Below, piece after piece: positions 8,801 through 37,737 of a stretch of DNA of 46,474 bases. The stretch comes from Ministeria vibrans ATCC 50519. Taxonomy: Eukaryota; Protista; Filasterea. A program made the translations under genes and the position numbers. The notes beneath the pieces are model-generated. The model was not told the origin of the DNA. It saw nothing but the letters and a program-made list of their open reading frames with translations, and ran no database searches. The stretch covers positions 1 through 46,474 of the forward strand of contig CALSCP010002846.1 in assembly GCA_943704425.1 (NCBI GenBank), read 5' to 3'. The number at the start of each line of letters is the position of its first letter. The first letter of the stretch is position 1.

Positions 8801-11800
8801 TTATCAATTTCCAAATTAGCCTTTTTTCTGTCTCAACTGGATCCTGCGACGCGCCGACAGTCACACTTTCCCTCTACGTCAGCGTCAACGAGTCTTTGTG
8901 TCACTGCGCGCCGGGATTCACTGGTGATGTGTGCGACATCTCAATCAACGAGTGTGCCTCGTCACCGTGTGCCAACGGTGCCAATTGCATCGACTCTAAC
9001 GGTCTGTTCACATGCGTGTGTCCTGCCGGGCGCACCGGTGCCCTTTGTGAGAGCGACGTTTCAGAGTGTGCTTCGCAACCCTGTGAAAATGGTGGTACCT
9101 GCATCGATTCGCTCACCCTTGACCATTTTCTGTGCGTGTGCCAGCTTGGATTCACCGGCATCGTTTGCGAAACTGACATCGACGAGTGTGTCTCGACTCC
9201 CTGCTTTAATGGCGCCACTTGCATTGACCAGGTCAATTCAGTTGTTTGTGTCTGTCTTTCGGGATTTGCCGGTGACTTTTGCACCACCAACATTGACGAT
9301 TGTGCCTTGCAACCGTGTGAAAATGGCGCCACGTGTATCGACGGAACTGGTAGTTTTGACTGTGTGTGTCTTGCCGGCTATACCGGCGTCTTGTGTGAGA
9401 CCGACGTTGACGACTGTGTTTCATCTCCCTGTCGCAATGGGGGTGTGTGTCGCGACGACAACAATCGCTTCTCGTGCACCTGTGTGCCTGGATTCTCTGG
9501 TCCCACTTGTGCGTTTGATCTCAACGAGTGTGACTCGTCCCCGTGCCTCAACGGTGGTGCTTGCAACAACCACGCCAATGGCTACTCGTGCGACTGTCCC
9601 GTCGGATTGAGCGGTGCTCAGTGCCAGAGTAATGTCAACGAGTGTGCCTCGGGACCTTGTGAGAATGGCGCTACTTGTGTCGACACCATTGCGACCTACT
9701 CGTGTGTGTGTCCTCGCGGTGTTACCGGCATTCAATGCGAATCCATCGTCGACGAGTGTGCCTCGTCTCCCTGTTGGAATGGTGCTACCTGTCTTGATTT
9801 TTCAGGCGCGTATATTTGCGCATGCCACGCCGGAACCACCGGGGAAAACTGCGAGTCTGACATTGACGAGGTACATCAAAAAAAAAAGTCTTTCTCTAAC
9901 CTCCTCATTATAGTGCTCTTCATTTCCTTGTGACAACGGTGGTACGTGTTCGACAGGCGCTATCTTTGGGGTGTTTTCATGTACCTGTCCCGATGGATAC
10001 AATGGCAGCCGCTGTGGAGTGGACGTCGACGAGTGTGCATCATCGCCATGCACCCATGGCGGCACTTGCATTGATCGCGTTGCGGGTTTTGTGTGTCAGT
10101 GTGCCCTTGGTTTTACCGGTGCTCAATGTCTAGTTGACATTGATGAGTGTGCCAGTAGTCCGTGTCTCAACGGCGCACTCTGCTCGACGCCCGCCGTCGA
10201 TGCCTTCCGTTGCGCTTGTCCAGCCGGTATCACGGGTGCCCAATGCCAAACCGACATTGACGAATGCGCCTCTAATCCCTGTGAATTCGGCTCGTGTCAA
10301 GACCTCAGTGCCACCTTCAAGTGTCTATGCGATCCTTTTTACACGGGTAAGACGTGTGACACGCAAATTGACGAGTGTGAATCGTCGCCGTGTGCAAATG
10401 GAGCCAGCTGCACGGACCAAGGTCGTGGATTCCTCTGCGAATGTACCAAAGGCTACACCAACGCACAGTGCCAGACAAACATTGACGAGTGTGAATCTTC
10501 ACCGTGTAAACACGGCGGAGTGTGTCATGATGCTGTGGATGCCTTTGTGTGTGAGTGCCCTCAGGGTTTTACTGGTAGTCAGTGTGAAGAGGACGTGGAC
10601 GAGTGTGCGTCGCAACCGTGCGGCGCAGGCATTGCCGTCTCGTGCGTGGATTTGCCCGGCGACTTCCAATGCATCTGTGGGCAGGGTGTGGCGTCGGGCG
10701 GTCACGACTGTGACGAGGAGTGTCTGTCGCATCCCTGTGCCAATGGTGGCACATGTACCGATCAGCTGTTGGGTTTTAATTGCACCTGCGCTGCCGGCTT
10801 TTTTGGTCATGACTGCTCGGCCGACACCGACGAGTGTGCATCGTGTCCGTGTGTCAATGCCGCGACTTGTGACGATATCCCCAACGGCTTTGTGTGTCAG
10901 TGTCTTGCCGGTTTTACAGGAACCCATTGTCAGAGTGATATCGACGAGTGTGCCTCGGATCCCTGCGAGCACGGGGGCACATGTGTCAACGCAGTCGTGC
11001 CAGGCATATTTGCGTGTCACTGCCCGACCGGTTTCAGTGGCGTTGTATGCGACGTGAACGTGAACGATTGTGAGTCAAGTCCCTGTTATCATGGCGGCTC
11101 ATGCTTGGATGGCGTGGACAGCTACCAGTGTGACTGTGCCGTGGGGTTTACCGGCGCTTCGTGCTCGACCGATATTGACGAGTGTGTTTCGTCGCCCTGT
11201 GAAAATGGCGCCGAGTGTCTTGACCAGTCGGGAGTCTTTACGTGTCTCTGTCCGACCGGTTTCACCGACGCTCGATGTGCCATCAACATTGACGACTGTG
11301 CAGCGCCTCCTCTCCTGGACCAAGCGACTGTGTGTCACCATGGAGGCACGTGCAGTGACGGTGTGGCAAGTTTTGTCTGTGACTGTCCAGCCGGTTACAC
11401 AGGCACGACGTGTGCGACGGAAATTGACGAGTGTTCTTCTGCTCCCTGTGAGCATGGCGACTGCACCGACTTGTTTGATGGGTTCCATTGCTTATGTCCA
11501 CCAGGGATTACGGGCGCCACCTGTGCCGACGACATTGATGAGTGTGTGTCGTCACCATGTGCCTTTGGGTCAACGTGTGTCAACCAAATCAACATGGGTG
11601 CCACGTGCCTGTGTCCGTGTGGACGCACGGGTGTTGCGTGCGACGTAGACATTGACGAGTGCCAGTCGGGTCCGTGTGAAAATGGAGCGACGTGCACCGA
11701 TGATGTATGCAATATACAGTGCATGTGTGCCGCCGGCTTTGTCGGCTCACGGTGTCAGCAGGAAATCAATGAATGTGTCTCGTCGCCCTGCCAGAACGCC

Positions 11801-14800
11801 GCCACGTGTTTGGACCTTGTCAATTCGTTTGACTGTGTCTGTGCCTCCGGGTTCACTGGCATCCTGTGCGACGTGGACATCGATGAGTGTCTCTCGTCAC
11901 CTTGTGCCGCTGCCGGCGCCTGTTCCGATGCTATTGATGGGTTCACGTGCGCCTGCCGTATTGGCTTCACTGGCACTCGCTGCGAGACCAACATTGACGA
12001 GTGTGCCTCGTCGCCGTGTCTCAATAATGGCATGTGTAGTGATGGCGTCGACAGTTTCTTGTGTGCGTGTCCATATTATTTTGCCGGTACACACTGTGAG
12101 TCTGCCGTAGACGATTGTTACTATACCGGCTGCCTGAACGGCGCGTCGTGTGTGGACTCATTTGATGCAGATGGGCCACAATGCATCTGCCCTGCGGGAT
12201 TCACGGGAGCCAAGTGTGAGACGGATATATTCGAGTGCGCCTCGGGACCCTGTGGTACCCATGGTGTCTGTCTCGATCTGGAAAACGCCTTCCGTTGCGT
12301 GTGCAATCCGGGATTTACGGGCACGCACTGTGAATCGGACATTGACGAGTGTGCTTCGTCGCCGTGCGCTCATATGGGAACGTGTACCGCTGCCACTGGT
12401 GCATCAAACTTGGGGTTTGTCTGCACTTGCGTGACAGGCTACACGGGGACACGCTGCGAGACAAACGTTGACGATTGCGATGCGAATTGGTGTGCTAATG
12501 GCGGTACCTGTGTGGACCAAGTTGATGGTTACCACTGCGCCTGTGCCGCCGGTTACACGGGAAGTGGGTGCGAGCAGAACGTTGATGAGTGTGCTTCGTC
12601 GCCGTGTGGATCCAACGGAATGTGTGTGGATGCAGTGCATAGCTACACGTGTCAGTGCAATATTGGCTTCACTGGTGAGGTGTGTGAGACTAATTTGGAT
12701 CAATGTGCATCGTCGCCCTGCCACCAGCACGGCACTTGTCTGAGCATATTGAGTGGACCTGCTGGGTTTCTGTGCTCGTGCAACAATGGCTACACGGGAC
12801 CACAGTGTGAGACAGACATTGATGACTGCTTGTCGTCGCCCTGTGTCAATGATGGCGAGTGTCTCGATGGACTCAACGAATTCACCTGCCTTTGCCTGGC
12901 TTCGTTTACGGGCGCCACCTGCGAGGTTTCGCTTGACCATTGTGAATCGAGTCCCTGTGTGAATGGTGCCTCATGCAGCACTGCCGTGACTGGTTTTGTC
13001 TGCGCGTGTGCTTCAGGCTTTTTTGGCAATCGCTGCGAGGCGGACACGGACGAGTGTCGCAGCAGTCCCTGTGCGAATGGTGCCACTTGTCAGGATATTG
13101 TTTCCGGTTTTACCTGTGACTGCCCTGCCTCCTTCACTGGCCTGACCTGTGACGAAGTACTAGTGGACCAGTGTGCCTCATCGCCCTGTGCCAATGGTGC
13201 GTCGTGCCATGCCACATCCAATCGCTTTTTCTGCACCTGTGCGTCTGGTTTTACGGGTGTCTCGTGTTTGGAAACCATCAACGAATGTGCCTCTGAGCCT
13301 TGCCTTAATGGTGGAACGTGCCGCGACGACTTGGTTGCGTTTGTGTGCGTCTGCCCCGCCGGGTACACTGGCGCTGTGTGTGCGACTGACGTGGACGAGT
13401 GTGAGTCTGAGCCGTGTCTCAATGGTGGGACGTGTCACGATTGGGTTAGTAGTTTCTCGTGCGTGTGTGCGGTTGGATATACTGGTGAGCAGTGCGAGAC
13501 AGCCGGCATTGCGTTTGCGTGTGCGTCTTCGCCCTGTCATAATGGCGCGACGTGCAGTGAGAGTGTCAGCAGTCTGCAATTTTATTTGTGTTCGTGTCCA
13601 TCTGGCTTTCGGGGTATTGACTGCGCCGAGAACTTTGAGGAGTGTACATCGTCGCCGTGCCAGAATGGCGGAGTGTGTCAGGATGGCACGGATGGGTTCA
13701 CGTGTGTGTGCAGTGCGCCATTCACGGGACGTCTCTGTGACGCTACGTCAGGCCTGTGTTCATCAATGCACTGTCTTAATGGGGGCACCTGTGAGGAGTT
13801 GGGGCAACAGCAGCTCGCCTACCAGTGTCGCTGTGTCCAAGGCTTCCTTGGCTCCCACTGCTCTGTTCCCATTGCCCTTGTGCCCACTACTATTGGTGCT
13901 GTTGTCAATCCGACACCGATTGAAACGGGCGACGGCGAGTCGCACTTGCGAACGCTCAGCGTGCAGCAGAGCACAGTTGTTGTAGAGGCTGCGGCGCAGA
14001 CCACTGCTGCGGAAGTGGTACTTGGGACGATTTCAACGGTGGTGGTTGAGACGACTGGTGTGGCGAAGATCACGGTTGTTAGTGCGGTGGTTGAAACGAC
14101 AGCTGCTGGTGCAGAGTTTGTTGAGACAACTATTGCTGGCGCAGATTTAGTTGAGACGACTGCTGCCTGTGTAGCGGCTGTTGAGACGACTGTTGTTGGC
14201 GCAGTGGCGGTTGAGACAAGTGATGCTGGTGTAGTGGCCGCTGAGACGACTGCTATTGGTGCAGAGGCCGCTGAGACGACTGATTTTGGTGCAGAGGCTG
14301 TCGAGACGACAGCTGTTGAAGCAGTGGCTGATGAGACGACTGTTGTTGGTGCAAAGACGACCGGTGTTTTTGCATTTGCCGCTAAGACGAGTGCTGCTAA
14401 AGCAGTGGCTGTTGAGACGACTGTTGTTGGAGCAGTGGCTGCTGAGACGACAGTTGTTGAAGCCGTATCTATTGAGACGACTGTTGTTGGTGCAGTGGCT
14501 CCTGAGACGAGTACTGCCGGTGTAGTGGCCGTTGAGACGACTACTGCCGGTGTAGTGGCTGCTGAGACGACTGCTGCCGGTGTAGTGGCAGCTGAGACGA
14601 CTGTTGTTGGTGCAGTGGCTGTTGAGACGACAGTTGTTGAAGCAGTATCTATTGAAACGACTGTTGTTGGTGCAGTGGCTGCTGAGACGAGTGCTGCCGG
14701 TGTAGTGGCCGTTGAGACGACTGTTGAGACGACAGCTGCCGGTGCAGCGGCTGTTGAGACGACTGTTGTTGGTGCAGTGGCTGTTGAGACGACAGCTGTT

Positions 14801-17800
14801 GAAGCAGTATCTATTGAGACGACTGTTGTTGGTGTAGTGGCTGCTGAGACGACTGATGCCGGTGTAATGGCTGCTGAGACGACTGATGCCGGTGTAATGG
14901 CTGCTGAGACGACTGTTTTTGAAGCATTGGCCGTTGAGACGACTGTTGTTGGTGCAGTGGCTGTTGAGACGACTGCTTTTGGTGTAGTGGCTGCTGAAAC
15001 GACTGCTGTCGGTGTAGTGGCTGCTGAGACGACTGTTGTTGGTGCAGTGGCTGTTGAGACGACTGTTGTTGGTGTAATGGCTGTTGAGACGACTGCTGCC
15101 GGTGTAGTTGCTGCTGAGACGACTGCTGCCGGTGTAGTGGCTGTTGAGACGACTGTTGTTGGTGCAGTGGCTGTTGAGACGACTGTTGTTGGTGTAATGG
15201 CTGTTGAGACGACTGCTGTCGGTGTAGTGGCTGTTGAGACGACTGCTGCCGGTGCAGTGGCTGCTGAGACGACTGCTGCCGGTGTAGTGGCTGTTGAGAC
15301 GACTGTTGTTGGTGCAGTGGCCGTTGAGACGACTGTTGTTGGTGCAGTGGCTGTTGAGACGACTGCTGCCGGTGCAGTGGCTGCTGAGACGACTGCTGCC
15401 GGTGTAGTGGCTGTTGAGACGACTGTTGTTGGTGCAGTGGCTGTTGAGACGACTGTTGTTGGTGCAGTGGCTGTTGAGACGACTGCTGCCGGTGTAGTGG
15501 CTGTTGAGACGACTGTTGTTGGTGTAGTGGCCGTTGAGACGACTGCTGCCGGTGTAGTGGCTGTTGAGACGACTGCTGCCGGTGTAGTGGCAGCTGAGAC
15601 GACTGTTGTTGGTGCGGTGGCTGCTGAGACGACTGCTGCCGGAGCAGTATCTATTGAAACGACTGTTGTTGGTGCAGTGGCTGCTGAGACGACAGCTGCC
15701 GGTGTAGTGGCTGTTGAGACGACTATTGTTGGTGCGGTGGCTGCTGAGACGACTGATGCCGGTGTAATGGCTGCTGAGACGACTGCTGCCGGTGTAGTGG
15801 CTGTTGAGACGACTATTGTTGGTGCGGTGGCTGCTGAGACGACTGATGCCGGTGTAATGGCTGCTGAGACGACTGATGCCGGTGTAATGGCTGCTGAGAC
15901 GACTGTTTTTGAAGCATTGGCCGTTGAGACGACTGTTGTTGGTGCAGTGGCTGTTGAGACGACTGCNNNNNNNNNNNNNNNNNNNNNNNNNNNNNNNNNN
16001 NNNNNNNNNNNNNNNNNNNNNNNNNNNNNNNNNNNNNNNNNNNNNNNNNNNNNNNNNNNNNNNTAATGGCTGCTGAGACGACTGATGCCGGTGTAATGGC
16101 TGCTGAGACGACTGTTTTTGAAGCATTGGCCGTTGAGACGACTGTTGTTGGTGCAGTGGCTGTTGAGACGACTGTTGTTGGTGTAGTGGCCGTTGAGACG
16201 ACTGTTGTTGGTGTAATGGCTGTTGAGACGACTGCTGCCGGTGCAGTGGCTGCTAAGACGACTGCTGCCGGTGTAGTGGCTGTTGAGACGACTATTGTTG
16301 GTGCGGTGGCTGTTGAGACGACTGCTGCCGGTGTAGTTGCTGCTGAGACGACTGATGCCGGTGTAGTGGCTGTTGAGACGACTGCTGCCGGTGTAGTGGC
16401 TGCTGAGACGACTGTTGTTGGTGCAGTGGCTGTTGAGACGACTGTTGTTGGTGTAGTGGCCGTTGAGACGACTGTTGTTGGTGTAACGGCTGTTGAGACG
16501 ACTGTTGTTGGTGTAGTGGCTGTTGAGACGACTGCTGCCGGTGCAGTGGCTGTTGAGACGACTGCTGCCGGTGCAGTGGCTGTTGAGACGACTGCTGCCG
16601 GTGTAGTGGCTGCTGAGACGACTGCTGCCGGAGCAGTATCTATTGAAACGACTGTTGTTGGTGCAGTGGCTGCTGAGACGACAGCTGCCGGTGTAGTGGC
16701 TGCTGAGACGACTGCTGCCGGAGCAGTATCTATTGAAACGACTGTTGTTGGTGCAGTGGCTGCTGAAACGACAGCTGCCGGAGCAGTATCTATTGAAACG
16801 ACTGTTGTTGGTGCAGTGGCTGTTGAGACGACAGCTGTTGAAGCAGTATTTATTGAGACGACTGCTGCCGGTGTAGTGGCTGCTGAGACGACTGCTGTCC
16901 GTGTAGTGGCTGTTGCGACGACTGTTGCCGGTGCATTGGCTGCTGAGACGACCATTGGTGCAGCGGCTGTTGAGACGACAGTTGTTGGTGCGAAGGTAGC
17001 TCAGACAACCGTTGCTAATGCAGCGGCTGCTGTTACGACCGCCACACCTGTTGAGCCTCAGACAACTTCTGCAGCGGTTCCTGTCCCGCAGACAACACTC
17101 TCTACCGAGACGACTATCGTTGCCCCCGATGCTGCGTCGACCTCCGCAAGTGCCCCGCTCAACTGCGACTCATCCCCCTGCCAATCGGGCGCTTCGTGTG
17201 TGAGTAAGGTGAACGACTTTACGTGCATCTGCCTCAAAGGGTTCACCGGCACACTCTGCGAGACGGACATTGACGATTGTGTCAACTTTCCGTGTGTGGG
17301 TGGTGGCACATGTGTGGACGCCGTTCTTGGATTCACGTGCACCTGCGCGGCCGGACGCACCGGCAATCAGTGCGAGACGCTCATTGATGAGTGTGCGTCA
17401 TCGCCATGTTTCAATGGAGCGAAGTGCATCGACGGCCCTGCCTCGTTTGAGTGTGTTTGTGTCCCAGGCTACACGGGCGCCACTTGTGCCGTCAATATGG
17501 ACGAGTGCGCGTCAGCGCCGTGTTTGAACAACGGTATCTGCGTTGACGGAATCAACGCCTTTACGTGTACGTGTAACACGACCTTCTATGGACGACGGTG
17601 TGAGCTGCTGCAGGACAATTGTGCTGGCGAGACGTGCAGTGGACGTGGAACGTGCATCTCAGACTCGAGTGTGTCTTTTGTGTGCGACTGTGAGCCGCTG
17701 TACACAGGCGAGCGCTGCGAAATGACCCTGTGCGACTCGAGTCCATGTGCCAATGGCGGCTCTTGCTCCACCACAACCGTCTCGTCTGATGGCTCGCCCC

Positions 17801-19255
17801 TCTGCTCATGCCCCCCCGCCTACAGTGGCGTCTCGTGTGAGGTCTCGCTGTGCGGTGTCTCTCAAGGATCGCATGCGCTCACCGTGTCCACCACACCACT
17901 GCGCTTCAACATTGTACCATCCGTGTTCACTGTCGTTTTCCCGTCTTCCTCCGTCCCACCGCTGCCCTTTTCCTTCTCTACCAGCAGCTTTGTCAGTGGT
18001 GATGCGTGTGATTCGACCGCCTTTGGTGAGCTTCCGTCTACCGTCATGCTGTCGAGTCTGTTTGAGCTGACGGGCAGCGCGACGGGCAACTTTCCGGGTC
18101 GTGGGGTTTTTGTTGAATTCTCAATGGGCAGTGCGTTCACGTCGGACGCAACTATTCTGTACAAGTCGAGTGCGTCTGACACAACATGGGAAACGGCCGA
18201 GAACATTGAGCGGGACGCGGTGACGGGCCGTGTGACGGGCTGGATGCGCCACTTCTCATTTGTCGGGGTGTTTTCGGTGACGCAGACGATTGGTGTGACG
18301 GGCCAGGACAGCGGCGGTGGCGGATCGAGCATGGTGCCCATCATTGCTGCCGTTGTGGGGATTGTGCTTGTCGTTGCAATCGTGGCGGTGGCCGTGGTGG
18401 TGTACCGCCGCCGCAAGGGCCGAGATAGTGGCACGCATAGCATGCGGTGGATGCCGAACAAGCCGAAGAAGGCGAAGAAGAGCAAGAACTCGATGGGCGC
18501 ACCGGGCAGCGACAATATGTTTGCGTTGAGTGTGGGGCCGTCGTCTCTTGCGTCGTATGAGGAGTCTTTTGAAATGCAACCGACTGGCATGATGAATTTC
18601 GTCGAAGGGACTGTGCAGGCGACACAGAGTCTCTTTGGCATCAACACGACCCCGCTCAATCCATCCTATGGTAGTGTCACGAGCGGTGCAGTACCTGCAC
18701 TACATCAACAACAGCCCACTGGTCTTCTGCTCAAGTCTAGCTATACTGGCTCAAGTAGCAGTAAGGGTCCAGCGCTGTCGGGTCCCGTCTACGAGACCAT
18801 CCACGACGGCGCTGCCACACCCGCCTACGAGACCATCCCGTACCCAATCGCCGAACTCACGGGCGCTTCCTATGTGTCAACATCAGACACACTCCAGAGC
18901 AACCAATCGTTTTCGAGCAACGTCTATGTCTCCAAGCAGCACTCCACGCTCTCCCAACAACAGGGCCTTGTGCCGCCCCCACCGCTGCCCACCGCTCGCG
19001 ACACCATGGTCACCCCTGTCCCTGCGCCTCGCCCTCCCAAGCGTCCCTCTGGCGACGGTGCCGCCCCTGTGCCCGCATCCCGTCCCGAGCGACCCGATCG
19101 AAAGCGCATCTCCATGTACGCGTACATTGAGCATGTCCCCGAAAATGACGCTCCCGATGTTGTTATTGAAGCCGCAGCAGCGGCAGCGCCACGTACCGGT
19201 GCGGCAAGGGTCCTCACCATTGGTGATTCTTCTTCTTCTTCTTCTTCTTCTTCTT

Positions 19256-19308
<53 letters not shown>

Positions 19309-20604
19309 CCGCCAACCCTAACATCAACGCCCGCCCCCAATGCGAACTACGACGTGCTCCCGGCCATCCGTCCGAAGCCACAGGGTCCAGTGTACCTGAC
19401 TCTGAAGGGCGCTGGCTCACACAGCTCCACTATTGCGCGCGCCAACGAGCTTCCTCTTGTGGACTACGAGGGCGAAGTGCGCCCCGACCGCATCAGCCTC
19501 ATTCCTAATGATTTGGACGGCTCAACGCAGGACCTGGGACGCGGCAACTTTGGCATTGTGTCGCGAGGCATGTTTGTGACGGCCGCCAAGGGCACGCCTA
19601 CACAGGTTGCGGTGAAGCACCTGGGCGCAGACGCAGATGAGGAGACGCGCACGTCCTTCCTCAACGAGATTCGCATGTACGAGCGACTGCGCCACCCGCA
19701 CATTACTGCCGTGCTCGCCAAGACGGTCGCGTCGCCCGACGCCTGTGAGTGGCGCCTTGCTCTTGAGCTCGCCAAGTACGACTTGCGCACCTTCCTGACC
19801 AATCGCTCGCACACTCTCTCCTTCGACGCCCGCATCCTCCTGTGCACCCACGTCTTTGCTGCCGGTAGCTTCCTTGCGTCGCAGCGTGTCGTCCATCGTG
19901 ACATTGCCCCGCGCAACTTTCTTATCTTTGCATCGCCGCTCGACCCGTCCGGCCGCACTCTCGTCATTAAACTCGCTGACTTTGGGCTCGCCCGTGAGTG
20001 TCTTGAGCGCGTTCCAGACTACCCCAACACGCCCGTCTACCTTGAACGCGAGCGCCTTCATCTTCCCCCTTGCTCTGCTCCCGAGACCATGGAGCGCGGG
20101 CGTGCCATGGAGCGTAGTGACGTGTTTGCTGTGGGTGTCACTGTAAGACTTATATTTTTGTCTTTGACTTTGTTAAAACTACAATAATAATATTATTATG
20201 ACTGTATCAATATACTGACTTGACCTGTGTTTCTCTTTCTTTATTGTGTTTAGTTGTGGGAAATCTGGAATGGGGCGTCGCTGGACAGTGACGCGCGGTT
20301 TGAGCAGTTCCCTGGGCCGTACTATTTGTGGCTGCGCGAACGCACAGGACTGCCCGACATTGACAACTGTCCACCTGTGATGTAAGTGAAAACAATTCTT
20401 GTGGTGTGTGATTGCGACTGACATTCACACATGCAATCTACTTCGTTTGTCATTAGAATGGCGCTGATCAATTGGTGTGTGCTTGACGATCCAATGCGAC
20501 GCCCGACCTTTGCGGACCTCACACAGGCGCTGTTGGATGAGCAACGCGCGCCCGGAAGCAGTGTTGTCAACAATATGCTTCTCCCGTCCGCCACCGATTT
20601 GTAG
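2830..20604 (+). CDS. Giant EGF-repeat single-pass receptor tyrosine kinase, about 5,400 aa, about 18 exons
   Basis: Signal peptide MPMRRLALVLMLCLL; about 59 EGF-like units; 10-aa repeat stalk; ZU5-like domain; TM helix at 18331-18405 followed by RRRK. Kinase motifs GRGNFG, VAVK, HRDIAPRN, KLADFGLAR, APE, SDVF, LWEI and RRPTF. GT-AG introns keep the frame (e.g. 3241-3423, 3475-3526, 3689-3738, 9871-9913, 20143-20253, 20382-20456). Ends ...PSATDL*. The frame break at the N-gap 15967-16063 is treated as an assembly artefact. Confidence 0.9.
2905..8934 (+). other. Region encoding nine split-EGF modules (domain inserted between EGF C3 and C4) plus two intact EGFs
   Basis: Each module reads C-x4-10-C-x5-9-C [110-150 aa insert] C-x-C-x8-C after splicing. 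The inserts share a GD(F/L)xxxxE(Y/F)-like motif, a Cys pair and a terminal TLxL strand. Confidence 0.8.
8085..8277 (+). repeat. Intronic minisatellite with an 18-20 nt unit (ctctctatcacgttgtttcc)
   Basis: About 10 tandem degenerate copies inside RTK intron 8026-8315. Confidence 0.85.
8935..13861 (+). repeat. Array of 42 tandem EGF-like domains, mostly calcium-binding (DIDEC...) type
   Basis: Manual count of 6-Cys units with D-I/V-D/N-E-C starts and C-x-C-x2-G-F/Y-T-G-x2-C ends. Confidence 0.9.
14040..16990 (+). repeat. Coding 30-nt minisatellite encoding about 95 copies of a 10-aa unit (V/A)ETT(V/A)(V/A)G(V/A)VA; interrupted by N-gap 15967-16063
   Basis: The unit gctgttgagacgactgttgttggtgcagtg repeats in frame within the RTK ectodomain. 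Confidence 0.95.
17850..18276 (+). other. ZU5-like juxtamembrane domain ending in HFS
   Basis: ...MLSSLFELTGSATGNFPGRGVFVEF...ILYKS...TWE...VTGWMRHFSFVGVF follows the ZU5 pattern (S-x-x-x-E, F-x2-3-V, W, terminal HFS). HFS codons are at 18250-18258. Confidence 0.65.
19228..19307 (+). repeat. (TCT)n then (GCA)n trinucleotide tracts encoding polySer/polyAla in the RTK cytoplasmic region
   Basis: Seen directly, in frame. Confidence 0.9.
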
Positions 20605-30738: not shown

Positions 30739-30942
30739 ATCACTTTGTTTCTTNNNNNNNNNNNNNNNNNNNNNNNNNNNNNNNNNNNNNNNNNNNNNNN
30801 NNNNNNNNNNNNNNNNNNNNNNNNNNNNNNNNNNNNNNNNNNNNNNNNNNNNNNNNNNNNNNNNNNNNNNNNNNNNNNNNNNNNNNNNNNNNNNNNNNNN
30901 NNNNNNNNNNNNNNNNNNNNNNNNNNNNNNNNNNNNNNNNNN

Positions 30943-36347: not shown

Positions 36348-37737
36348 CTGCAAGAGAGTGAGAGAGAGAGAAACACGGGATTGAGTGAGGTGGCGAGTGG
36401 GGGGGGNNNNNNNNNNNNNNNNNNNNNNNNNNNNNNNNNNNNNNNNNNNNNNNNNNNNNNNNNNNNNNNNNNNNNNNNNNNNNNNNNNNNNNNNNNNNNN
36501 NNNNNNNNNNNNNNNNNNNNNNNNNNNNNNNNNNNNNNNNNNNNNNNNNNNNNNNNNNNNNNNNNNNNNNNNNNNNNNNNNNNNNNNNNNNNNNNNNNNN
36601 NNNNNNNNNNNNNNNNNNNNNNNNNNNNNNNNNNNNNNNNNNNNNNNNNNNNNNNNNNNNNNNNNNNNNNNNNNNNNNNNNNNNNNNNNNNNNNNNNNNN
36701 NNNNNNNNNNNNNNNNNNNNNNNNNNNNNNNNNNNNNNNNNNNNNNNNNNNNNNNNNNNNNNNNNNNNNNNNNNNNNNNNNNNNNNNNNNNNNNNNNNNN
36801 NNNNNNNNNNNNNNNNNNNNNNNNNNNNNNNNNNNNNNNNNNNNNNNNNNNNNNNNNNNNNNNNNNNNNNNNNNNNNNNNNNNNNNNNNNNNNNNNNNNN
36901 NNNNNNNNNNNNNNNNNNNNNNNNNNNNNNNNNNNNNNNNNNNNNNNNNNNNNNNNNNNNNNNNNNNNNNNNNNNNNNNNNNNNNNNNNNNNNNNNNNNN
37001 NNNNNNNNNNNNNNNNNNNNNNNNNNNNNNNNNNNNNNNNNNNNNNNNNNNNNNNNNNNNNNNNNNNNNNNNNNNNNNNNNNNNNNNNNNNNNNNNNNNN
37101 NNNNNNNNNNNNNNNNNNNNNNNNNNNNNNNNNNNNNNNNNNNNNNNNNNNNNNNNNNNNNNNNNNNNNNNNNNNNNNNNNNNNNNNNNNNNNNNNNNNN
37201 NNNNNNNNNNNNNNNNNNNNNNNNNNNNNNNNNNNNNNNNNNNNNNNNNNNNNNNNNNNNNNNNNNNNNNNNNNNNNNNNNNNNNNNNNNNNNNNNNNNN
37301 NNNNNNNNNNNNNNNNNNNNNNNNNNNNNNNNNNNNNNNNNNNNNNNNNNNNNNNNNNNNNNNNNNNNNNNNNNNNNNNNNNNNNNNTCCAAAATCCCCT
37401 CTTTGTGACAAACAATAGCAAATCACAAGTTTCAAAACGTTTTTACTCGATATCGAGTTTTTGAAAAAAATCGGGGTTTTTTTTGATCAGTCTCAATTAA
37501 TTCTTTGCAGATTCTGACTTCGACTATGAGCCAACGTGCCAAGACGTGGATGGATTGGGAGCGCGTCCACTCGATTCTGTGCAGCGCTGGCTCATACCAA
37601 ATCCTCTACTTCGAACGCAAAGCCACGCACCACAAACCCAAGCCGATAAAAAATGAGCCACAGAGGAGTGGGGAAAGCAAAAGCGATAGACCAAAATGGG
37701 TGTAAAAAGTGTGCAACAACAACAGGTGTAGATGTGG

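Follow-up and report, generated by a model that had tools for sequence, protein, structure and literature searches.

The receptor locus

Self-cleaving juxtamembrane modules such as GAIN, SEA and the Notch NRR are a known way to turn mechanical pull into a signal, and to our knowledge no receptor tyrosine kinase (RTK) has been described with a self-cleaving module of the GAIN/ZU5 type. We wondered whether a giant receptor encoded in the filasterean Ministeria vibrans might be of this kind. The gene lies in the 46,474-nucleotide stretch of DNA analysed here (contig CALSCP010002846.1; hereafter the window), and a sequence-only reading of it had proposed an extracellular ZU5-like domain, about 25 residues before the transmembrane (TM) helix, that cleaves itself at HF/S and serves as a convergent equivalent of the GPS.

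The architecture of the protein could be followed along the forward strand, on which all coordinates below are given. The peptide HFS-FVGVF is in frame, by translation, in an open reading frame (ORF) at 16066-20187; an upstream ORF (9971-16066) reads on into this one, with only a 97-nt gap of Ns (15967-16063) between them. Pfam recognised EGF repeats in six stretches within 17131-20184 (E = 3.7e-34), and translation placed a membrane-proximal block of EGF-like repeats (17131-17850) directly before a domain of 160 residues (17851-18330), whose borders are the cysteine after the last EGF (nt 17851) and the end of a Gly/Ser stalk (nt 18330). A paralog profile and a predicted model, both described below, mark this domain as a juxtamembrane beta-sandwich of the ZU5/GAIN-B type. 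Its H134-F135-S136 triad (domain numbering) is encoded by the codons cac-ttc-tca at 18250-18258, which puts the predicted scissile bond, F135/S136, between nt 18255 and 18256.

The last beta-strand of the domain starts S-F-V-G-V-F and occupies 18256-18276 (model strand 137-142, in a block with pLDDT >90); its alternating hydrophobic pattern is kept across paralogs. A flexible stalk rich in Gly, Ser and Thr follows (18277-18330; model pLDDT 56-63) and leads to a single TM helix of 25 residues that starts M-V-P-I-I, identified by translation and a hydrophobicity scan (18331-18405; 18331-18423 together with its basic stop-transfer sequence, R-R-R-K-G-R). S136 lies 25 residues before the helix. 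On the far side of the membrane, a tyrosine-kinase domain comprising the N-lobe and most of the C-lobe lies at 19528-20145 (Pfam PK_Tyr_Ser-Thr, E = 5.4e-31, profile positions 5-194 of 258). A downstream exon at about 20431-20604, joined by a presumed splice, appears to encode the remainder of the C-lobe; an ORF there carries a kinase subdomain-XI-like motif.

Since the EGF repeats lie upstream and the kinase downstream, the protein has type I topology and its ZU5-type domain is extracellular. The analysis confirmed that a giant EGF-rich RTK carries a juxtamembrane domain of the ZU5/GAIN-B type: both the position of the HFS-FVGVF peptide relative to the TM helix and the extracellular, juxtamembrane placement of the domain, with EGFs before it and TM helix and kinase after it, are as the sequence-only reading had them.

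Predicted self-cleavage and its precedents

Our preferred reading is that the domain is probably a stand-alone, ZU5-type, predicted self-cleaving juxtamembrane module of a type I RTK. Judged by homology, motif conservation and position, the F135/S136 bond is likely to be cut while the protein folds or matures. In this superfamily the hydroxyl of a Ser or Thr attacks, a His acts as base and a buried Phe or Leu holds the kink (PMC3210808; Brogan & Rudner 2026). In the window domain, Ser136, assisted by His134 and with the buried Phe135 as anchor, would attack the strained F135-S136 peptide bond; an N-to-O acyl shift followed by hydrolysis of the ester would then split the protein. The N-terminal product would be very large, comprising the EGF arrays, the repeat stalk and most of the sandwich; the C-terminal product would start at S-F-V-G-V-F and consist of the last beta-strand, a stalk of about 20 residues, the TM helix and the kinase. 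The two fragments would stay joined non-covalently because the last strand would remain in the sandwich.

Cytosolic proteins provide one set of precedents: PIDD cleaves at HF/S, and CARD8 and NLRP1 cleave at SF/S, with Ser as the nucleophile, Phe as a buried anchor and fragments that stay associated (PMC3210808). The ZU5 domains of PIDD1 and UNC5CL and the FIIND of NLRP1 and CARD8 share their beta-sandwich fold class and their Pfam family, ZU5, with the window domain, and their cleavage sites, HF/S in PIDD1 and UNC5CL and SF/S in FIIND, sit at a C-terminal turn before a long beta-strand, as does the window HFS. In these cytosolic proteins, however, ZU5 is accompanied by UPA and a death-fold domain, whereas the window domain is extracellular and stands alone after EGFs, followed by stalk, TM helix and tyrosine kinase. 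Pfam found no UPA or Death domain in the window protein, and no ZU5 with UPA or a death domain was seen in this genome.

A second set of precedents comes from prokaryotic cell surfaces. The MAIN domains of bacteria and archaea are stand-alone GAIN-B/ZU5-like sandwiches with HFS in secreted, surface-anchored proteins that have large ectodomains, the anchors being sortase, SLH or cell-wall-binding domains or lipid; MAIN domains with HFS cleave at F/S in vitro and in vivo, as established by Edman sequencing, a cleavage that S-to-A abolishes and S-to-T restores, and the products co-elute and co-purify (Brogan & Rudner 2026, bioRxiv 10.64898/2026.05.12.724683). Likened by description to this family, which is defined on prokaryotes only, the window domain resembles it in architecture and in HFS, and the SLH-anchored Bacillota proteins that are the top matches of our profile share the architecture of the described MAIN proteins. 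MAIN proteins are without a signalling domain; the window protein, in contrast, belongs to a eukaryote and has a TM helix and an active-looking tyrosine kinase. Bacterial surface proteins had also been reported to carry ZU5 autopeptidases (Zhang et al. 2012, PMC3482391), and an extracellular or surface ZU5-type domain is not without precedent (PMC3482391; Brogan & Rudner 2026).

Notch NRR and the SEA-domain receptors (mucins) share a concept with the window protein, by analogy only: a pre-cleaved, non-covalently held juxtamembrane module from which a large ectodomain can be released mechanically. Folds and chemistry are unrelated to those of the window domain: furin makes the S1 cut in Notch, and SEA has a different fold. 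A SEA-fold or NRR-fold reading of the domain was ruled out by the fold search (VIA-align).

Copies of the module in the genome

We searched the genome in six frames (29.7 Mb, 2860 contigs). The paralog profile gave 25 matches, which correspond to 23 distinct modules when one intron-split gene is allowed for (the C16 paralog, whose halves, L014 and L024, were analysed separately, exon by exon), and all 23 stand directly before a hydrophobic TM segment. A Pfam ZU5 scan added five modules, again extracellular and juxtamembrane; three of these carry C-V-T-S-F-S, the SF/S variant of NLRP1 and CARD8. The genome total is at least 28, all of them extracellular and juxtamembrane, which rules out the module as a one-off feature of this RTK. 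Spacing is also regular: in 25 of 27 copies scanned, the P1' residue lies 10-30 residues from the start of the hydrophobicity window, which opens a few residues before the TM segment. Of the two exceptions, one carries an inserted EGF and one is a wrong pick by the script.

The effectors that follow the module differ. Pfam placed a kinase after it in L009, L010, L015, L016, L018, L019, L020 and L027 as well as in the window gene, and in L037 translation gave a motif resembling the kinase glycine loop after the TM segment; with L037 included, at least ten copies are joined to kinases. Five further copies (L022, L023, L028, L029 and L031) stand directly before a Secretin/adhesion-type 7tm_2 domain and occupy the usual place of GAIN. 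In three of these five, Pfam finds a canonical GPS that arrays of EGF repeats have moved upstream; in a fourth, L022, a GPS match lies on the same contig, about 1.3 kb upstream. For another eight (L012, L013, L021, L026, L030, L036, L038 and L040), no kinase was found within the stretch examined, in which their cytoplasmic parts are partly sampled.

What might cleavage do for such a receptor? While the fragments are joined, the N-terminal fragment would restrain or position the kinase stub; a pull on the ectodomain, or its engagement, would make the fragments dissociate and leave a TM-kinase with a short stub, its activity or fate changed. By analogy with the release of the N-terminal fragment of adhesion GPCRs, we propose tentatively that loss of the ectodomain may alter the activity or fate of the kinase stub.

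A serious rival to this signalling role is that cleavage serves release alone: as a breakaway link, the module would shed the giant adhesive ectodomain under load, and the kinase would just lose its ligand-binding part. A breakaway link releasing the ectodomain under load is the role proposed for MAIN domains (Brogan & Rudner 2026, bioRxiv 10.64898/2026.05.12.724683), and the eight paralogs with no kinase in the stretch examined indicate that the cassette need not go with kinase signalling. The cytoplasmic parts of these seemingly kinase-less copies are only partly sampled, however, and a kinase follows the module in at least ten copies, a 7TM signalling domain in five. A pure release function is in our judgement possible, if well short of probable.

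Conservation of the HFS motif

An alignment of 20 paralogs has a mean column identity of 35%, and His134 is its sole invariant column; Gly130 and Ser/Thr136 are kept in at least 90% of the sequences. The motif takes the forms HFS, HLS and HLT, with HLS or HLT in three paralogs. In the model, H134-F135-S136 occupies the turn that links strand 127-132 to the last strand, 137-142, and the earlier claim that HFS lies at a self-cleavage position agrees with this: it is the turn before the last beta-strand in which PIDD1, Nup98, GAIN and bacterial MAIN domains have theirs. The alignment supports strong constraint on the motif across paralogs, as would be expected of a functional site and not of a chance tripeptide.

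A full-profile HMMER search of 1.84 billion representative proteins extended the comparison. At a threshold of E = 1e-3 it returned 8854 matches; 422 of these reach 1e-10 or better, and none falls below 1e-30. The best matches are mostly bacterial surface proteins and include SLH-anchored Bacillota proteins with a D-H-F-S-K-Y-A-V-like motif (E = 6e-26 to 1e-21); other bacterial matches are lipoproteins with DUF4215 repeats whose gene neighbourhood is bacterial. Two matches from SRA assemblies, P0019 and P0030, are compact eukaryotic RTKs with the order ZU5-like(HFS)-stalk-TM-kinase. We re-aligned 225 domain instances from the 150 best hits; 205 of these have residues at the motif, and 183 (89%) carry H-[FL]-[S/T/C]. 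Counted by motif, there are 116 instances of HFS, 40 of HFT and 22 of HLS; SFS occurs in five. Judged from these alignments, the H-[FL]-[S/T/C] triad is a hallmark of the distant-homolog family.

An intact motif is no guarantee of cleavage, and the domain might instead be an uncleaved ZU5-type rigid spacer or binding module, like the ZU5 domains of ankyrin, UNC5A-D and ZO-1; HFS would then be structural, its buried Phe anchoring the turn. Ankyrin ZU5 domains are not known to cleave, and they are the best sequence matches of the window family, in a match that leaves out the C-terminal motif. Some GAIN domains that bear the consensus site likewise stay uncleaved. In Nup98, moreover, the His is only partly required, H-to-A having a mild effect, and in CARD8 other residues matter to cleavage too (PMC3210808). 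Against a mere spacer stand the invariance of the His, and of no other residue, in 20 paralogs of such low identity, and a nucleophile column made up of Ser and Thr only, the pattern expected of catalysis and not of packing. The triad is also kept in the great majority (89%) of the aligned distant instances, and bacterial homologs that bear HFS do cleave (Brogan & Rudner 2026). We regard a non-cleaving domain as rather unlikely, and retain the predicted self-cleaving module as the preferred reading.

Fold and kinship with ZU5 and GAIN-B

Kinship of the domain was traced through its family. Taken alone, the window copy has no Pfam match even at E up to 10, and against PDB sequences a first profile of seven sequences gave only spurious NTF2-like matches (E ~0.6). 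The 20-paralog profile, in which the window copy is the first row, matched both tandem ZU5s of ankyrin-2 in the same database (E = 6.6e-11); the ZU5 matches to ankyrin-2, -1 and -3 range from 6.6e-11 to 2e-7, that to UNC5B is weak, and GAIN sequences are absent among the matches. The ankyrin match is confined to profile positions 15-114; the sequence match to ZU5 does not, therefore, derive from the catalytic C-terminal part. Pfam ZU5 matches three of the 20 paralogs (best E = 2e-4), and in the six-frame genome scan L022 scored 22.4 bits against the 21-bit cut-off of the family (PF00791). Among ten distant homologs examined, eight passed the Pfam ZU5 gathering score, at 21.3-55.2 bits (P0001, P0003, P0004, P0005, P0016, P0019, P0030 and P0055). 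At the level of sequence, the membership of the window copy in ZU5 is transitive, via paralogs and homologs, and not direct.

An AlphaFold2 model, a prediction made from a shallow alignment of paralogs only, has a pLDDT of 82.7 and a pTM of 0.77; its ten beta-strands make it all-beta over the 160 residues save for one helical turn of four. The best Foldseek matches in the PDB were a mixture of GAIN (CD97, BAI3, CELSR1, BAI2) and ZU5 (ankyrin-B, -R and -G, UNC5B). VIA-align gave Z 10.8 for the ZU5 of ankyrin-B (139 aligned residues, rmsd 3.8) and Z 10.4 for that of ankyrin-R (123 aligned, rmsd 2.7), and among GAIN-B structures Z 10.7 for BAI2, 10.4 for BAI3 and 10.0 for CD97; the first clearly unrelated folds, glycoside-hydrolase beta-sandwiches, followed at Z ~6-7. 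The predicted fold fits ankyrin ZU5 and GAIN-B equally well. The ESM Atlas added little: bacterial and archaeal clusters without a name matched at 0.92, and ZU5 was the closest cluster with a name (0.86). Taking profile and predicted model together, the domain is a member of the ZU5/GAIN-B superfamily, and by sequence it is nearer to ZU5. The ZU5-like beta-sandwich of the sequence-only reading is borne out by the ankyrin-2 profile match and by the predicted fold, and the AlphaFold model, when set against the ZU5 and GAIN folds, matched both (Z 10.8 and 10.0-10.7, respectively).

Liao et al. (JMB, 2014) reportedly described homology of ZU5, GAIN-B and Nup98, and extracellular ZU5-like domains in CILP and FAM171. 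Zhang et al. (2012, PMC3482391) treat ZU5, GPS/GAIN-B and Nup98-C as homologous members of a single superfamily. Because this homology is published, and because the model matched GAIN-B as well as ZU5, the earlier description of the domain as convergent with the GPS is incorrect.

Could the domain be a canonical GAIN/GPS that Pfam missed, or an unrelated fold that arrived at the GPS solution by convergence? It shares with the GAIN/GPS of adhesion GPCRs and polycystin-1 an extracellular, juxtamembrane position and an H-hydrophobic-S/T motif in the turn before a last strand that is predicted to stay as the N-terminus of the membrane fragment. In Foldseek and VIA-align, moreover, GAIN-B structures score as well as ZU5 against the predicted sandwich, and the best hhalign path against the GAIN-B regions of the same genome sets W on W and HFS on HLT. 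This alignment, of the paralog profile with 18 genuine GAIN-B/GPS regions, is not significant, however, at E = 0.3 against 6.6e-11 for ZU5, and the window copy has no match to Pfam GPS (PF01825). Unlike GAIN, the window domain is without the helical subdomain A, for which there is no room because an EGF abuts the domain. Unlike the GPS, it is without the GPS cysteines and disulfides (none of the four cysteines is present, and the C-terminal half of the 20-paralog alignment has no conserved cysteines) and has Phe, not Leu, at P1. Its coupled effector is a kinase, not the 7TM domain of adhesion GPCRs. Membership in the GAIN family is rejected on the hhalign result and on the missing subdomain A and GPS cysteines; the fold match to GAIN-B supports shared ancestry at the level of the superfamily, as far as a predicted model can indicate. 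Convergence is at odds with the shared fold and with the published homology (PMC3482391). Either version of this reading is very improbable.

That HFS is a chance tripeptide in a linker outside any domain, a reading for which the window copy's want of a Pfam match of its own might speak, is refuted by the confident model, at least 23 profile paralogs and five Pfam ZU5 matches, the 8854 library matches and the conserved motif column.

Implications

In the literature searched we found no report of a GAIN/ZU5-type module on an RTK, nor of a stand-alone ZU5-type domain that replaces GAIN next to the 7TM domain of holozoan adhesion GPCRs; a 2025 survey in eLife, on the GPCRs of the close relatives of animals, makes no mention of ZU5. 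What appears to be new here, on the evidence of sequence and predicted structure, is a known type of autoproteolytic module in a new class of receptor, with cleavage as a prediction.

A bolder and doubtful extension concerns origins. This lineage may have made a general pre-cut cassette out of an ancestral HFS-type ZU5/GAIN-B domain and set it before tyrosine kinases and adhesion-type 7TM domains alike, and the RTKs may be mechanically gated through a GAIN-like tethered stub, an arrangement older than animals. Under such gating, loss of the N-terminal fragment, driven by force or ligand, would unmask the stub and thereby activate the kinase or license further processing.

Within one genome, one HFS-type cassette is joined to at least ten RTKs and to five receptors of the adhesion-GPCR type. 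This suggests that a unicellular organism already used the ancestral stand-alone GAIN/ZU5 form as a general module for its receptors. If cleavage is confirmed, the module would represent a new regulatory principle for RTKs and would bridge bacterial MAIN, ZU5 and GAIN in evolutionary terms.

A second self-cleavage candidate in adhesion-GPCR-type genes

Elsewhere in the Ministeria vibrans genome, the extracellular ZU5-like module bearing the candidate HFS triad lies immediately ahead of a 7tm_2 domain in five adhesion-GPCR-type genes (loci L022, L023, L028, L029 and L031, on contigs C2584, C2066, C572 and C1103). Three of these five additionally have a canonical GAIN/GPS by Pfam, with the motif C-x-C-N-H-L-T-N-F-A-V-L-F, far upstream of its usual place and separated from the module by EGF arrays; L022 is a fourth with a GPS match, about 1.3 kb upstream. 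Genes that combine the HFS module with GAIN/GPS therefore have two candidate self-cleavage sites each. The strand following HFS in the 7tm_2-linked genes (for example, D-V-V-V-Y-Y-E) occupies the usual tethered-agonist position. Canonical GPS motifs (Pfam PF01825) occur in at least 53 places in the 29.7-Mb genome, all above the cut-off; canonical GAIN domains and the stand-alone HFS module thus coexist, both in large numbers.

Variants of the triad

In another group of juxtamembrane ZU5 domains, which score above the Pfam ZU5 cut-off, C-V-T-S-F-S stands in place of HFS (L036, L038 and L040, on contigs C1214, C1507 and C1072). These domains are extracellular and follow EGF repeats in type I membrane proteins, and their SF/S is the self-cleavage motif of the FIIND domains of NLRP1 and CARD8. 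In one further paralog (L025, contig C232), HFS is replaced by the GPS-type triad H-L-T; here the candidate site is about 60 amino acids from the start of the transmembrane hydrophobicity window because an additional EGF-like, Cys-rich segment is inserted between the module and the transmembrane helix.

Gene model of the window receptor tyrosine kinase

The reading frame of the window's receptor tyrosine kinase (RTK) is split into two ORFs (9971-16066 and 16066-20187) by an assembly gap of 97 N at 15967-16063, inside the stalk of hydrophobic 10-amino-acid repeats. The kinase ORF ends at 20187, covering only positions 5-194 of the 258 in the Pfam model, and a motif resembling kinase subdomain XI is encoded in a short ORF at 20431-20604; together these suggest that, in the 20150-20604 region, an intron interrupts the 3' end of what is otherwise a long exon almost free of introns. 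Further gaps lie at 30754-30942 and 36407-37387, alongside several 10-N runs, and the low GC content that shows at 36-38 kb is not real but produced by a 981-N gap.

Distant homologs

Among the hits in the protein library searched, the nearest motif-level look-alikes of the window copy, sharing I-R-H-F-S-F-V-G/A-V/P-F, are four small bacterial lipoprotein-like proteins (P0004, whose gene context is locus L035, P0012, P0016 and P0055). Their ZU5-like domain directly follows a lipobox-like Cys. Gly-rich linkers come after the domain, as do DUF4215 Cys-rich repeats in P0004 and P0012. The predicted cut would leave the N-terminus anchored and set the C-terminal part free, a polarity opposite to that of the window RTK.

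Four other homologs (P0003, P0020, P0021 and P0046) each contain three to five tandem domains, counted by motif, most of which end in C-G-x-T-x-H-F/L-T-N-F-A-I/V-L-L, a sequence that combines the GPS tail C..H-L-T-x-F-A-x-L with the HF-S/T of ZU5. P0003 scores 32 bits against Pfam ZU5 and has a weak GPS match. These tandem-domain proteins may represent intermediate forms linking ZU5 and GAIN-B.
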